The notes beneath the pieces were generated by a model. That model ran no database searches. It saw only the letters and a program-made list of their open reading frames with translations, and had not been told where the DNA came from. From Phaeosaccion multiseriatum (taxonomy: Eukaryota > Protista > Ochrophyta, other classes): a stretch of 64,000 nucleotides of DNA. A program made the translations under genes and the position numbers. The stretch is taken from positions 1,364,001 through 1,428,000 of the forward strand of contig OZ218954.1 of the NCBI GenBank assembly GCA_965112735.1, given 5' to 3'. Below are positions 16,133 to 24,902 of the stretch, one piece after another (position 1 is the stretch's first letter; every line of letters starts with the position of its first letter).

Positions 16133-17972
16133 GGGAGGAGGAGGGGGAGATGAAGACGAAGATGGAGGAGAGGAAGGGGAAGACGGAGACGAAGATGAAG
16201 ACATGTGGGAAGGGTGGGCAGAACCCCTTGAGAAGCTTGAGAAGGACTGTTATAGCATGGCTACGGACAACACCATGTCTCTCTCAACCCTGTCCACACA
16301 CTCCACCAATTCGGCCGCTAGCTCTGCAGGAGGAGGAGGAGGGTCGGCTGTGATACGATTGGGCAGGGGGCCCGGCTTTAGTCAATCCCCCCGGGGAACG
16401 CCCCGGGCGAGCCTCTCCCCGGCGGGCAGTGTGTCTCCAGGGGGGAGGAGGCGAAGCTACCTGGTGGGGGGGGGGGGCGGGCACCAGAGCAGAAGGCAGG
16501 GGGGAGGAGCAGGGACCAGCGGCAGCAGCAGCAGCAGCGGCGGGAGGCATTCGAAGAGCGCATCGATGTGAGTGTGGGGGGGGTCCCTTTGTTTCACATC
16601 ATCCCGACATTGTCATACCCGCCCTGTGCCCAGGATGGGGAGGAGACGTATCTTGAGGGAAGACAGTAGGGGCTTTCAGGCTCTTATGTATCACGCATGG
16701 AAGAGTGACTCAGAGCAACGCACCCACCCACCCACTTTTCCCTCCTCTCCGCTCTGCAACTTGTGACGACTTACGGTATCCCTTTGCTTTGACTCGCCCT
16801 TCCCCTCCCTCCCTCCCTCCCTCCCTCCCTTCTTTTGTGCGTCGTGCTCGCCCTCTTGCTCCTCTGTCCCCTGCGGTGTGGACCAACCAACGTACCTTCA
16901 AACCTCTCTCCTTCTCAGGGACAGCTTGTCGTCGTCTGCTGGGCTGGCGACATCTGGCTTGGAGCGAGTGATGGAGCGGTCGGCAGCCTTCTGCCAGCGG
17001 CTCTGGCAGCCCGCTACGGTGGACGAGCGTTCGGCCTTGGGATGCAAGCACTATCAGGTGGGTGCGTGGGTGCTTGCGTGCGTGCTTGCGTGCGTGCTTA
17101 CGTCGGTCCTTGGGGGGATGGGTGCGGGTGTGGCAGCATGCCCCCCCCCCGCCACCTTGTCCCCATCCTTGCGCTGCCGATTCTGACCGAGAATCTGACC
17201 CCTTCGCCCCGACTCTGGTCCTGATCCTGACGCTGACCCTGACCCGCTCTCTCTCTCTCTCCACAATCAGCGCCTGTGCCGGAGCTCATCCTGGGCAGAA
17301 GAGAATACGGCGGCATACAAGGCGCTCTACATATGGCGGGATCAGCTTGCTCGTGCTTTGGACGAGTCTCCTCGCTACGTGTGCCCATCGCCCTTACTTG
17401 TCAACATTGCGCAGGAGCTGCCTCGAACGCAGGACCACTTGAATCGTATTGCGAAACCGTTGCCTCCGCTGTTGGAGGGGGGCAGCATCCATGCGGTGCA
17501 GTGCTTACGAATGGTGGAGGATATCGTCAACAAGAGCGCCACGGGTGTGTGTGGTGGGCGGACGTCGCGTCATGGGAGCAGTAGTGAGGGGAGTGTAGGC
17601 GGAGGTGGAAACCTCACCCCTCGGAGTCGGGGCTCTTTTCATGCGGATTTCGCGTTGGTGGAGGGAGAGGAGGAGGAGGATGAGGACGACGGGGATGCGC
17701 ATTCACCAGCCAAGACCGGTCCGGCAGCAATAGGGGAAGGAGGGGGAGGAGGAGAAGGAGGGGGAGGAGAAGCAGGGGGTGGTGGTGGTGGTGGTGGTGG
17801 AGGAGGAGGAGGAGGAGGAGGAGGAGGAGGAGGAGGAGGAGGAGGAGGAGGAGGAGGAGGAGGAGGAGGAGGAGGAGGAGGGGGAGGAGAAGCAGGGGGG
17901 GGAGGAGAATCAGGGGGTGGGTCAGCAGAAGATGCGCCCTCCCTGCCTCCTGCAGATGGACGATGCCGTTAG
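12302..17972 (+). CDS. RRP6-like DEDDy 3'-5' exoribonuclease with HRDC domain, multi-exon
   Basis: ExoI FGFDVEMH, then GMTCLLQISS..DYLIDPL; ExoII GGDVPSLYRDFG; DWRSRPL; ExoIII YAAFDSHYL; HRDC ALYIWRDQLARALDESPRYV (~17320-17460). Start codon and N-terminal exons are less certain. Confidence 0.88.
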
Positions 17973-18037: not shown

Positions 18038-18105
18038 CAGCTCAGCTCAGCTCAGCTCAGCTCAGCTCAGCTCAGCTCAGCTCAGCTCACTCAGCTCAGT
18101 TCAGT
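18038..18105. repeat. (CAGCT)n pentanucleotide repeat in the region 3' of the RRP6-like gene
   Basis: cagctcagctcagct..., about 12 copies. Confidence 0.9.
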
Positions 18106-18458
18106 TCCACTCGGTCCAGCTCATTCGACGCTAAGCGGACGTGAAGAGAAGGGGAAGGCGCGTTCTACATTGGTGCGTGAAGAACATTGGGGTACGCCTT
18201 AGCCACGTGTGAATCGCACTGCATATTTCTTTACAATACGCAATTGGTCCCCGCGATTGAGGCACTAGGATGGTTCAAATGTAGTAGAGGTTACGTAGGG
18301 TCTACGTACGCCTCGCGAAGACATCGGCCGGCCGGCCGGCCGGCGCCCCAAACACCGAATGTGAAAGGTGAAAGGGAGGTCACAGATTTCGATGGAGAAC
18401 CAAATCCTACAGATCCCTTGAGACACCCCGCTTCGTTTTGCGCGTCGTGTCGGTGCTG

Positions 18459-20621
18459 ATGAGCCTGCACACCCCTGGGCTGGGGCTCACACAAACACTT
18501 CCCAGGCTCTACTCTGCATCGAGGGAGTTCTGCTTCTGTTTACCGAGGAGGGAGCTGAGTTTCGTGGCCCCCTCATCAATCCCCCCCTCCAGCACCAAAG
18601 AAAGGCAGGATGAGCACTGGAGAGCTGAAAGCAGAGTGGAGCAAAGGAGGTTTCGAATTGCCACGAAGAGTCGCGGGAAGGGAAGAAGGAGGAGTACATT
18701 TATCGGGGCTGTGCATCAGCCCTCAGAGGATGGAGCAGCAGCAGTGGGGGCGCGTCTACTGCTGCGACGGCAGCGAGCGGCAGGCAGACGCGTCCCTCTC
18801 TTGCACGAGCTACTGGAGAGTATACCTGGCCAGGTGCTGACGGGGCGGTCTCGTCTCCAGCGACTCAAGCGACTGCAAGACGTGCTGGACCTTGCGCTAT
18901 TGCGCTCTCCAACAGCAGCTGGGGAGGAGGAGGAGGAGGGGGAGGAGGAGGAGCAAGCTCATGCAAACGTACGTGACGCTGCCTTACCAAGGCGAAGAGG
19001 AAGAAGAAGACAAAGAAGTATGACAGAGACCGGGAGACCTGTTGATGGTCATGGGGATGATGATGGTGATGACGGGGGCCTATGTCAGCGTCGGAGTCGA
19101 GTGATGGTCGACGTGGGCTGCGATCATGGGTACCTCGCCATTGGACTGGCAGCAGGGGGGGCGAATGTTATCGCTATTGACATGGCGGAGGGTCCGTTGC
19201 AGCGAGCCAGGAGCAACGCGGAGGTGTTCTTCGTCAGGGATCGGCAGGACCAGAGACAACAAGAACAAACAAATCATGATGAGGGAAATTGTGCTGGTGG
19301 CGGTGGTGGTGGTGGGTGTGGCTTCGAGAGCGTCCGGAGTCGTCCTGGGGGGAGGGAGGAGGAGGAGGTGGCGGAAGGAGGCACACCGAAGCAGCCAACG
19401 ACGACAGGAGGAGAAAGAGAGGGAGGCCCGGAGGGGCTCGAGCTGCGCCTCGGGGATGGGCTGACGGCATTGACCAGCGAGGACAGAGGTGAGGAGAGAA
19501 ATGCGAGTGTGAATGTGGGTGTAAAGAGGGGCGGGGAAGGCGTGAGGAGGGCGGGCGCACAAAAAGTGGAAGTGTATGGCACCGCATGAAGAGACGTATA
19601 TGCGTACTTGCCATCCCACTCCAGTTTTCTAAGCCCTTGTTAACTCGCATCGATTACGCCTGTGCCAGACGATCGTAAGAGACTCTTATGCCCTTGCCAT
19701 CCTCACCCGATTCCCCTCCAACACACGAATGTCTCAGTGGACACAGTGTGTATAGCAGGCGTGGGGGTCTCTACCATGCTCGATATTCTCGAGGGAAACA
19801 CTTGCGGTGGCCCTTCTGCTGCGTCCGGGAAATGTAGTAGTAATGACGGCAAAGAAGCCATCAAAGTAGCTCAGCAGCAGCAGGGGCAGGAACAGCAGCA
19901 GGAAGAGCAGCAGTGGGTGATACAGCAACCGAGAAGCATGGCAGTCGCCAGCCCACTCGCATTGGTGCGTCAGCTTGGCGTACGGACGCTTGTGCTTCAG
20001 CCGATGGACTCTCGCCTCACCTACATGTTCCGACTGCGTAAGTGGCTATCCGATAATGGGTGGCTGGCGAGGGAGGAGAAACTCGTTACAGTGGAGAATC
20101 GGCACTACATCACCGTGCGAGCGATAAGGAGGGAGGACAGCAGCGCGAGGGTGGGATCACCAGAGAGTGCGTATCGTTCAGCAGACTACCCTGCTGGCGA
20201 CCGCGGCCAAGAAGAGCAAGAGAAAGAAGACGGAGAAGAAGCAGATCCATCTCTGGCGCCTCTCCTGTTGGGAACGTGGTCATCCACTATTGCTGCCATG
20301 GCTGCGGCACAAGAGGGCGGTACTTCCACAAGTGTTTCTTTAGACACCCGTGCTGCCTCTACCTCTCCCTCTAGCTCTATCACAACTCCGGCCTTGTCCT
20401 CCTCCTCCTCCTCCTCCTCCTCGGAGGAGGAGGAGGAGGAGGACGGCCCCGCTGGCTTTGTGCGCTATGTGCTCAAGCAAAGGCAGTGGCTGCGGCTCAT
20501 CGTCAAGCAACACAGGGAGGCACTGAGAGCCTGCGAAGAGGAGCAGACCCAGCTTGAGGTGTTGGATAGCTTCATACGTACCTGCCCCTTGCCCCTCCTG
20601 CCCCGAGCCACCGACTCTTAG
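18459..20621 (+). CDS. trmK: TrmK-family tRNA (adenine22-N1)-methyltransferase-like protein; exons 18459-19488 and 19738-20621
   Basis: Ordered TrmK motifs: KRLQ, VDVGCDHGYL, AIDMAEGPLQRA, LRLGDGL, VDTVCIAGVG, LVLQP, LRKWLSDNGW, EEKLV..Y, plus a C-terminal helical segment. GT-AG intron 19489-19737 preserves the frame. Confidence 0.85.
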
Positions 20622-21471
20622 CAGCAGCGCCACGCCTTAGGGTGCGGGCATGATGAAAGAGAGGGAGGGCAGTGGGAAGTGCTTGCTTGCTTGCTGGCGT
20701 GCGTGCGTGCGTGCAAGTGTGCGTGTGTGCGTGCGTGCGTGCGTGCGTATGGGCGTGCGCGTGGACGTGAATTGGTTGACGGATGGACACGTTTTACCGC
20801 TCTACCGCGTGCGACACCACCAGTCTCTTCATCATCATCAGAGGCTAATTATTTGTTTAGTGTAAGAGCAAAAGGCAGAGGAGGAAGGCGGGGGGACGAG
20901 GGGCATAATAAGTGCCTGGTCCACATTATGTGCAATATCTGCATCTACAGGCTTCGGCGACGTGTAGAACAACAAATGATAGTAGACTTCCGGTAGACAA
21001 GGTACTTGAAGGAAGCCTGCAGATACCGCACAGAATGTGTAAAGTACCAGGCAAGGCACCTGAAGGATCTCAGCTCCTCGTACCCAATCTGCTGCCTTCA
21101 CTTCCCTTCTCTCTAGTCTATATGATGTCTCGTATGTCCAAGGAGAAGGTCCGAAGGAGCACTCTGTCTCGGGTGCCGTGCCACTCCCTTCTTTTCCAGA
21201 CAACATACTCCTCGCCGTGTCCGCATCTGCAGCTGCGCCCTCGGCCCCTCGCGCTACCCAATAGTCTGGCGTGCCTTCCTCGACAGGCGGGCGGTTCCGT
21301 CGGGTGTCGGGACCTCCACCGCCACAGGTGGTCGAAGCTCCCCTCGCTTATCGCCCTGATGCCCTGATACCTGAGACTTGGACCCCCCATGTCCCCCCCT
21401 CTCAACTTGAAGGCCATGGGGTGGGGTGGGGTGGGATAGTTTGGGTTTGCTGCCTCTGTCTGCTCGAACTT

Positions 21472-23970: not shown

Positions 23971-24703
23971 AGCAGGCAGGCAATCGCAATCGATCAATTA
24001 GGGTGTAAGAATGTAAGTCAGTCAGTCAGCCATTCAGTCACTGCCTCCGAGTCATCACTAACTAGCCCACTCACTCACCAAATAACGAGCCCTGCGGTTT
24101 GTCGAAGAGTGTGTAGCTGGTAACCTCACCGTCGATCAAATTAGTCGGCCTGACAACCGCCCATTCTACTCCAGAGGAGCCTAGCGAATGAAGGTATGCA
24201 GCGGCTCCTTCATTATCGGCGTGTGGAGGAAGCAGGTACCGAAGCAATGACAGCACCACTCTTTCCGAAAGCACCCGCACATCATCTTGGCCATTGGGAT
24301 TTGCAGCACCTTCAGTCCCCATCAAGATGAACTTGGTCTCCTTGTTGGAGGTGCCGATGGCCTCACACAGGCGCGTCGTGGCTTCGGTTACCAGCCTCCT
24401 AGGGTGTCCGTACATTCCCCTCAGGGTTATGTTGTGCCCGAGGCAACTGACCACCGCGTCGCAACCTTGAACATGCTCCTTCATCTGATCATCGGTGAGG
24501 TCCAGTAGGGAGGCTTCAGTCACTGCGAGGCGATCCCCGTAAGATTCCGATGTAGCGCCGCTCAAGCTCTCCAAGCTGTTGATCATGGCTTTTCTGTCAC
24601 TCACGACAACTTTCACATTGTGGCCCTTTTCCAGTAGCAAATGCACGACGTATTTGCCCGTCGCTCCACTTGCTCCCACTACTAAGGCTGTGGACAATCC
24701 CAT
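23444..24703 (-). CDS. NAD(P)-binding Rossmann oxidoreductase (flavin reductase/BVR-B-like atypical SDR); exons 24079-24703 and 23444-23607
   Basis: LVVGASGATG dinucleotide motif, CDAVVSCLGH, EWAVVRPTNL; second exon GTVRRSNVAKYM..WEEWKFKMPVI joins in frame. Confidence 0.88.
23660..23931. repeat. (GAGT)n microsatellite, intronic
   Basis: Direct inspection. Confidence 0.97.
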
Positions 24704-24902
24704 CGCAAGAGATAGGCTTATTGTTAGAAGGAGGAGGAGGGTGTGCACGCTGGAGACTCGAATGGTGGCTTGTTACCGAAAGAAAACTTTCGTCAAAACT
24801 TTCTTTCGTGGATGACCAACCGCGGCAGATGGTCGCCAATGGCGGGAGAGGGACGCCTGTACGATCCCTGTACAAAACCTGGATAAAAACGAAAGAAGAG
24901 GG

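Follow-up and report, generated by a model that had tools for sequence, protein, structure and literature searches.

Does a photosynthetic eukaryote encode in its nucleus a tRNA methyltransferase that the literature regards as absent from Eukarya? The question is raised by a gene in a 64,000-nt stretch of the genome of the ochrophyte Phaeosaccion multiseriatum (assembly GCA_965112735.1, contig OZ218954.1, positions 1,364,001 to 1,428,000; hereafter the window), which an initial annotation, made from the sequence alone, had read as a TrmK gene of bacterial type that was acquired horizontally and then domesticated. TrmK (YqfN, COG2384, PF04816) is known as a tRNA (adenine22-N1)-methyltransferase from bacteria such as Bacillus, Staphylococcus, Streptococcus, Mycoplasma, Geobacillus, and Vibrio; papers of 2008, 2019, and 2024 describe it as having no equivalent in Eukarya, and it has been promoted as an antibiotic target for want of a mammalian homologue. 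The window gene is a nuclear member of the TrmK family belonging to an old algal clade, and it is likely that its product is imported into an organelle by a presequence and there methylates A22 of organellar tRNAs as bacterial TrmK does.

Joining positions 18459–19488 of the window to 19738–20621 (plus strand) yielded a 1914-nt open reading frame (ORF) that encodes 637 amino acids and ends in a stop codon. The two parts come from long plus-strand ORFs that share one frame (18438–19589 and 19662–20621), and the ATG at 18459 is the earliest to follow the in-frame stop that lies upstream. The intron between them has the donor AG/GTGAGG and the acceptor TCTCAG/TG (the slash marks the splice site). 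Reading through it is impossible because it contains an in-frame stop (TGA, 19587–19589); once it is removed, the motif GE.DTVCIAG, which occurs throughout the family, and its spacing are regained in the alignment with relatives. As judged from these signals, the gene has a two-exon structure with a single GT-AG intron. Everything that the initial annotation had described (the TrmK sequence blocks in order, one GT-AG intron, padding with low-complexity sequence, and an Arg/Ser-rich N-terminal extension of ∼120 residues) is seen in this two-exon model, the extension measuring about 125–130 residues.

The locus was also present in four public runs, all from one sample, as genomic contigs; these runs are DNA, because the intron is spanned unspliced. 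Within the presequence-coding part, at a run of seven C residues at 18581, one contig of run X1 is short of one C, whereas the three other runs agree with the window. A genuine frameshift at this site was dismissed, being contradicted by three of the four runs and leaving a frame without start codon (frames read by eye); the missing C is probably a read or assembly error. Apart from this contig, no frame-breaking difference was observed across the four runs. An additional in-frame intron at 20167–20343, the only such candidate with a good acceptor, was likewise rejected, as its removal would eliminate a conserved L.LG motif; a weaker in-frame candidate read by eye (18969–19088, 120 nt) has a poor pyrimidine tract but may still be an intron. 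Comparing intron positions gave no additional support for the splice site, because neither the four introns of the Ectocarpus orthologue nor the two of the Chrysoparadoxa orthologue match the intron of the window gene. These two orthologues (L081:3001-6005 and L082:3001-3921, respectively) have two intron positions in common, DIG/.DH and AG.G/, both of which are missing from the window gene, whose own intron precedes the second by ∼10 codons. Loss of introns combined with the gain of a new one, or else intron sliding, may have taken place in the Phaeosaccion lineage.

Both exons matched the Pfam family TrmK (PF04816), exon 1 with 28.5 bits (cut-off 27; E 1.3e-6; profile positions 1–43) and exon 2 with 24.9 bits (E 1.7e-5; profile positions 93–143). 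The match between the spliced protein and a profile of length 230 that was built from 80 bacterial TrmKs amounted to 93.5 bits (E 7.7e-25 at Z = 1e6) and extended, in three pieces of collinear order, over profile positions 18–168, which bears out the family assignment of the initial annotation; none of 200 shuffles of the spliced protein matched this profile. A better match to another family of methyltransferases would have spoken against that assignment, and PF12847 indeed scored slightly above PF04816 on both exons (39 bits on exon 1). However, PF12847 is not a rival family, because a genuine TrmK from Bacillus atrophaeus (L072) matches it over the whole model (183 bits, beside 258 bits for PF04816); the bacterial and algal relatives all carry both. 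Searching NCBIfam returned generic methyltransferase noise only; this blank is meaningless, as the genuine Bacillus TrmK went unmatched there too, which shows that a TrmK model is missing from the library.

Structural comparison led to the same family. The best sequence match of exon 1 in the PDB was 3kr9, the TrmK of S. pneumoniae. When the relative from Chrysoparadoxa was modelled with a 75-sequence alignment (predicted local distance difference test [pLDDT] 89.8; predicted template modelling score [pTM] 0.86), its top eight PDB matches were without exception chains of TrmK, belonging to seven entries (6q56, 3gnl with chains A and B, 3ku1, 3lec, 6qe6, 3kr9, and 7o4o), so that every solved TrmK structure was matched. 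They were found with E between 1e-16 and 2e-13 over 226–242 columns, which include the coiled coil at the C-terminus as well as the catalytic domain, whereas the next match, PrmA, covered the Rossmann part only (161 columns; E 1.5e-8). An AlphaFold2 model of the exon 2 product of the window gene alone contained strands 4–7, the hairpin, and two confident C-terminal helices (237–257 and 265–281 in the numbering of the exon 2 product; pLDDT 81–93), and TrmK chains were again its seven best PDB matches, if weakly. In the alignment, the C-terminal helices coincide with the Y..H..WL helix of the family. The C-terminal helical hairpin domain, which TrmK requires for activity, is predicted to be present, and the profiles and models taken together identify the protein as a TrmK-family class I S-adenosylmethionine (SAM)-dependent methyltransferase with the two-domain architecture of TrmK.

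The blocks characteristic of TrmK follow each other in the expected order: DVGCDHGYL (residues 218–226), EGPLQRA (244–250), RLGDGL (330–335), IAGVG (349–353), LVLQP (428–432), and LRKWLSDNGW (443–452). For a comparison by residue, the window protein was aligned with 55 algal and 56 bacterial sequences, using the numbering of the Bacillus enzyme. The D, G, D, and H of motif I are invariant or nearly so in these sequences, and D218, G220, D222, and H223, together with D241 (the acidic residue after strand 2), all occupy such columns, as expected of a class I Rossmann SAM-binding site. R138, D222, D333, Q431, R444, R465, and Y467 correspond to R9, D29, D78, Q121, R130, K151, and Y153 of Bacillus, and the EGP motif is kept as well. 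R9, D29, and D78 of B. subtilis TrmK have been tested by mutation; R9 was found to be essential, and the exchange D78A nearly abolished activity (PMC6511850). Q121 and Y153 were highlighted by a model of the same enzyme (PMC2425500). Thus, five of the six experimentally important residues are kept, and the sixth, M96, is a valine in the window protein. Met96, part of the AGMGG motif, contacts SAM, and the M96A variant of the B. subtilis enzyme is nearly inactive (PMC6511850). All 56 bacterial sequences and 49 of the 55 algal ones have Met at this position, and three algal ones, including that of Ectocarpus (AGVG), have Val. The exchange weakens the claim of activity, though not that of homology; it is conservative, however, and recurs in intact orthologues. 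About half of the protein consists of four low-complexity inserts, of which three are found at sites where brown-algal relatives have inserts, too.

Searched exhaustively with HMMER, exon 2 returned 24 proteins (E down to 7e-14), one of which was a low-complexity artefact. The remaining matches that were inspected are algal TrmK-like proteins, and the relatives pass PF04816 with 43–98 bits (cut-off 27). Identities were 43% for Choristocarpus (CAM9246892.1), 42–47% for Ectocarpus (CAB1100275.1), 44% for Scytosiphon (CAM9887299.1), 46% for Chrysoparadoxa (CAM9668460.1), and 45% for Vitrella brassicaformis (CEM11380.1; UniRef A0A0G4FDX8). A word-index search with the motif I region found no relatives, because they share too few exact words. 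A profile search using an alignment of compact family members retrieved ∼70 more eukaryote-like sequences with 168–344 bits, followed by bacterial TrmKs with 84–126 bits; the former include proteins of Bacillariaceae, Cylindrotheca, and Chaetoceros and many metagenomic sequences to which JGI gives the name "tRNA A22 N-methylase." An ESM Atlas cluster with this fold comprises 91 members, for the most part Bacillariophyta. Common to the algal group, and not found in bacteria, is an insertion of four residues after LQP (LQP..SR...L..LR.WL), where the window protein reads LVLQPMDSRLTYMFRLRKWL.

In unrooted maximum-likelihood trees, a branch that sets the algal rows apart from all others was strongly supported. 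Quick trees of 112 and 116 rows gave this algal clade Shimodaira–Hasegawa-like approximate likelihood ratio test (SH-aLRT) values of 99 and 97, respectively, and a careful tree of 60 rows an ultrafast bootstrap of 100 and an SH-aLRT value of 98. The window protein was placed as sister to three brown algae (91/73), then joined by Vitrella (98/90) and then by Chrysoparadoxa (96/73). By its sequence, the window gene belongs to an old algal clade that comprises brown algae, Chrysoparadoxa, diatoms, and the chromerid Vitrella, and, because it is nested in this strongly supported clade beside the brown algae, it was inherited within algae rather than recently imported.

The N-terminal extension, which looks like a presequence of organelle type, contains 21 Arg and 13 Ser residues and has a net charge of +13; its length is estimated from the first residues conserved in the family, which lie near positions 110–126, and from the R9 equivalent being R138. 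In a crude hydropathy test, the best nine-residue stretch of the window N-terminus reached 1.46, and the sequence LSFVAP is present. Between 17972 and 18459, no ATG-started hydrophobic ORF that could serve as an upstream signal-peptide exon was found, and a stop is reached when the reading frame is followed upstream. By the same crude measure, a hydrophobic core resembling that of a signal peptide is present in 38 of the 75 relatives that carry N-terminal extensions, and several contain diatom-type SSAF, RAFS, or SLAFQ motifs. Such N-termini point to the plastid as the more likely compartment for the family. The presequence of the window protein, again on crude measures, looks more like one of mitochondrial or stromal type; this protein could reside in the mitochondrion, the plastid, or both.

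What would the enzyme do there? Bacterial TrmK methylates N1 of A22 and needs an intact L-shaped tRNA, a non-Watson-Crick pair between purine 13 and A22, and both of its domains (PMC6511850; PMC9801127). This activity, which produces 1-methyladenosine at position 22 (m1A22), has been held across deep bacterial divergence, as work on Bacillus, Mycoplasma, Geobacillus, and Vibrio demonstrates (PMC2425500 and PMC9801127 among the sources). Because pocket and architecture are conserved, we infer that the same reaction, carried out on organelle-encoded tRNAs, is the most likely function of the window protein. The protein would be imported into the organelle by its presequence of ∼125 residues, bind SAM through motif I (D218-G-C-D222-H), D241, D333, and Q431, and dock the L-shaped tRNA with its catalytic domain and C-terminal helical hairpin. 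N1 of A22 would then be methylated in the D-stem of those bacterial-type organellar tRNAs that have a mismatch between purine 13 and A22.

Several observations weigh against this proposal. The literature reports no m1A22 in any eukaryotic organelle, and m1A was not found when the chloroplast tRNAs of Arabidopsis were surveyed. The N-terminus of the window protein appears to lack the signal peptide that plastid import in ochrophytes needs, and, because of this, the plastid assignment of the family does not transfer cleanly to it. V352 takes the place of the methionine whose replacement by alanine nearly inactivates the Bacillus enzyme. The bacterial profile reaches neither the first helix nor the C-terminal domain, although stopping short of the latter agrees with the low conservation of that domain (PMC6511850). 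Finally, the reads found for this locus are genomic only; the splice is predicted from sequence and homology, and expression is presumed. When the proposal of organellar A22 methylation is extended from the window protein to the clade, namely, that the nuclear-encoded, organelle-directed TrmKs of ochrophytes and chromerids in general place m1A22 on the tRNAs of plastids (or mitochondria), with a related domain fused to AlkB in green algae, it becomes tentative, if still quite possible.

The origin of the gene can be accounted for in other ways. Since the family is otherwise bacterial, a bacterial origin is likely, and it was probably ancient. To this extent, the horizontal acquisition proposed in the initial annotation stands; that the acquisition is distinctive of this organism does not, given the algal clade. 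A recent transfer from a bacterium specifically into this alga, followed by domestication, could draw on the family being overwhelmingly bacterial, on the literature giving no eukaryotic equivalent, and on the nearest prokaryotic sequences being those of Bacillota. Yet, when at least 536 confirmed prokaryotic loci were ranked, the top 80, all from Bacillota except for one Myxococcota metagenome-assembled genome, reached only 27–40% identity to the Chrysoparadoxa sequence used as query, without a close match; no cyanobacterial or other specific donor was found among these 80. The best matches of the window protein are algal (up to 47%, Ectocarpus), it is nested in the 100/98 clade beside the brown algae, and it has the clade-specific four-residue insertion and the insert sites of brown algae in common with them, all of which renders a recent transfer very improbable. 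The phylogeny with bacterial and algal homologues that had been called for thus gave the gene its place next to brown algae but, among those 80 loci, no close donor, and the broad vertical distribution that would have argued against horizontal acquisition was found among red-plastid algae but is not shown across all eukaryotes. The chance that the gene results from bacterial contamination or misassembly is practically negligible. Only the bacterial affinity of the family speaks for it, whereas the gene has an intron of spliceosomal type, low-complexity inserts of host type, and a GC content matching its surroundings; sequencing depth is even with the flanks in all four runs (contigs up to 254 kb), and the closest relatives are intron-bearing algal genes, those of Ectocarpus and Chrysoparadoxa included. 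The gene is genuinely nuclear, as had been maintained from the start.

Even an anciently acquired, vertically inherited gene may encode a protein that is inactive or acts elsewhere. A decaying copy, that is, a pseudogene or a non-catalytic relic, would be compatible with the exclusively genomic reads, with low-complexity sequence making up about half of the protein, and with the replaced SAM-contacting Met. It is nonetheless improbable: the 1914-nt frame is intact over two exons with all other key residues kept, the inserts occupy loops where relatives have inserts too, Val at the M96 site is also found in Ectocarpus and two other algal sequences, and no frame-breaking variant occurs in the other three runs from this sample. 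More serious, but still unlikely, is the possibility that the TrmK fold acquired a changed target in the algal clade, be it another tRNA position, rRNA, or a cytosolic RNA. The clade sits on a long branch, it has the four-residue insertion and GV instead of GG after the Met, and a diatom group has lost the EGP motif and R130; the window protein adds Val for M96 and its lack of a clear signal peptide. Furthermore, Roovers et al. suggested altered specificity for divergent Gram-negative members of the family (PMC2425500). Against this, the window protein and the brown-algal group keep R9, D29, D78, Q121, R130, K/R151, Y153, and EGP, the Chrysoparadoxa model superposes on TrmK over both domains, and m1A22 specificity is constant from Firmicutes to Vibrio. 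Methylation of A22 in organellar tRNAs is the reading we prefer.

How does the window gene compare with systems already known? With bacterial TrmK, its product has in common the N-terminal helix with R9, the Rossmann domain with D.G.DH, GDGL, AGxG, LQP, and the Tyr-containing hairpin, followed by the C-terminal helical hairpin. Unlike bacterial TrmK genes, it is nuclear and contains an intron, and the encoded protein has a presequence of ∼125 residues and four long inserts (637 versus ∼235 residues), in addition to the insertion after LQP and Val for Met96; its activity is a prediction. The uncharacterized algal TrmK-like proteins are most similar, as they belong to the same clade and have the DTVCIAG motif, the LQP..SR...L..LR.WL pattern, N-terminal extensions, and, in brown algae, the same insert sites. 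The window protein differs from them in apparently having no N-terminus resembling a signal peptide, which many of them possess, in the position of its intron, and in being the longest member seen. Databases already hold, and automatically name, many algal TrmK proteins; the window gene, thus, adds to a known family, within an unstudied algal clade, and represents neither a novel type of system nor something unique to this genome. No description of eukaryotic TrmK members, or of this algal clade, was found in searches of the TrmK literature.

A second type of eukaryotic TrmK was encountered in chlorophytes, where the domain is fused to one of the AlkB type (PF04816 plus PF13532). The green-algal proteins P0031 (537 amino acids) and P0033 (588 amino acids) and the cluster members P0127-P0140 comprise a full TrmK domain (PF04816, ∼110 bits) and an AlkB-type 2-oxoglutarate-Fe(II) oxygenase domain (PF13532, ∼110 bits), so that an m1A writer domain is paired with one from a family that removes m1A and 3-methylcytidine. 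The corresponding Atlas cluster has 166 members, 94% of them from Eukaryota with Chlorophyta the commonest, and bears the JGI name "tRNA A22 N-methylase/alkylated DNA repair dioxygenase AlkB." No description of such a fusion was found in the titles and abstracts returned by a literature search on TrmK and AlkB. The fusions form a separate clade without the signature of the algal clade, and the window gene has no AlkB-type domain. In the 60-row tree, the fusions and the algal clade were located on the non-bacterial side of one branch with moderate support (95/73), which would fit a single old origin in eukaryotes without proving it.

In its logic, the proposed system resembles MnmA, MnmE/G, TilS, and MiaA of the apicoplast, bacterial-type enzymes encoded by nuclear genes that act on organelle-encoded tRNAs (PMC10219651; PMC12069591); location and function are experimentally supported for these enzymes and predicted for the window protein. 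TrmK was not found by term searches of the consulted papers on apicoplasts and chloroplasts. Both the type of enzyme and the logic of organelle import are ordinary.

Neighbouring ORFs encode ordinary domains (HRDC, NAD(P)-binding, PepX_C, and ion-transport). The upstream ORF (17358–17972, plus strand) has a weak HRDC match at its start (E 7e-4), followed by an uninterrupted stretch of ∼45 Gly residues, the other frames of which give poly-Glu or poly-Leu. Between its stop (17972) and the TrmK start codon is a spacer of 487 bp, which contains a pentanucleotide microsatellite, (GCTCA)n, of ∼13 units (18040–18104), where the contigs of the public runs break. Directly downstream of the TrmK stop codon, at 20680–20760, follows a simple repeat, (TGCG/TGCGTGCG)n, which is probably part of the 3′ untranslated region. 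Farther away, the ORF at 24071–24745 (minus strand) is, again, an ordinary neighbour, with a Rossmann domain that is clearly of the NAD(P)H-binding (PF13460, E 1.6e-16) or epimerase type. The features of the TrmK gene itself are compiled in the table.

Table. Features of the TrmK-family gene of P. multiseriatum (positions in the window; residues of the 637-residue protein).
Feature	Position	Strand	Residues and content	Basis
Exon 1	18459..19488	+	1-343 plus first base of codon 344; presequence, helix alpha-1, SAM-binding motif I, EGP motif, RLGDGL	ORF, translation
Putative N-terminal presequence	18459..18833	+	1-125; Arg/Ser-rich, no clear hydrophobic signal-peptide core	composition, hydropathy
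Helix alpha-1 region	18834..18902	+	126-148, RSRLQRLKRLQDVLDLAL; holds R138 (Bacillus TrmK R9)	
Low-complexity insert 1	18903..19094	+	Glu/Gly/Arg/Asp-rich; specific to this organism	alignment
Motif I, DVGCDHGYL	19110..19136	+	D218, G220, D222 (D29), H223	
Low-complexity insert 2	19233..19436	+	site where brown-algal relatives also carry inserts	alignment
RLGDGL	19446..19463	+	R330; D333 (Bacillus D78)	
Intron	19489..19737	+	249 nt, GT-AG, phase 1	
Exon 2	19738..20621	+	344-637 and stop; IAGVG, LVLQP, LRKWL..NGW, beta-hairpin with Y467, C-terminal helices	
IAGVG	19752..19766	+	V352 at the site of the bacterial invariant M96	
Low-complexity insert 3	19791..19958	+	Gln/Glu-rich	alignment
LVLQP to LRKWLSDNGW	19989..20063	+	Q431 (Q121); clade-specific four-residue insertion between; R444 (R130)	
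Low-complexity insert 4	20136..20477	+	includes the conserved L.LG motif (LAPLLLGTW)	alignment
Two predicted C-terminal helices	20448..20582	+	581-625; counterpart of the TrmK coiled-coil domain	

The window gene also holds a lesson for annotation, as heavy low-complexity padding nearly hides a known domain from standard profile thresholds. Together with its ∼70 algal relatives, it establishes that photosynthetic eukaryotes do carry the TrmK family, contrary to the statement repeated since 2008. The predicted activity lends itself to testing in tractable species that have an orthologue, among them Ectocarpus, Cylindrotheca, and Chaetoceros. If the enzymes are active, diatoms, brown algae, and related groups, which are major marine primary producers, would have in m1A22 an unrecognized modification of their organellar tRNAs, and, given that no m1A was reported in the chloroplast tRNAs of Arabidopsis, m1A22 could mark a difference between plastid translation in the red and in the green lineage.

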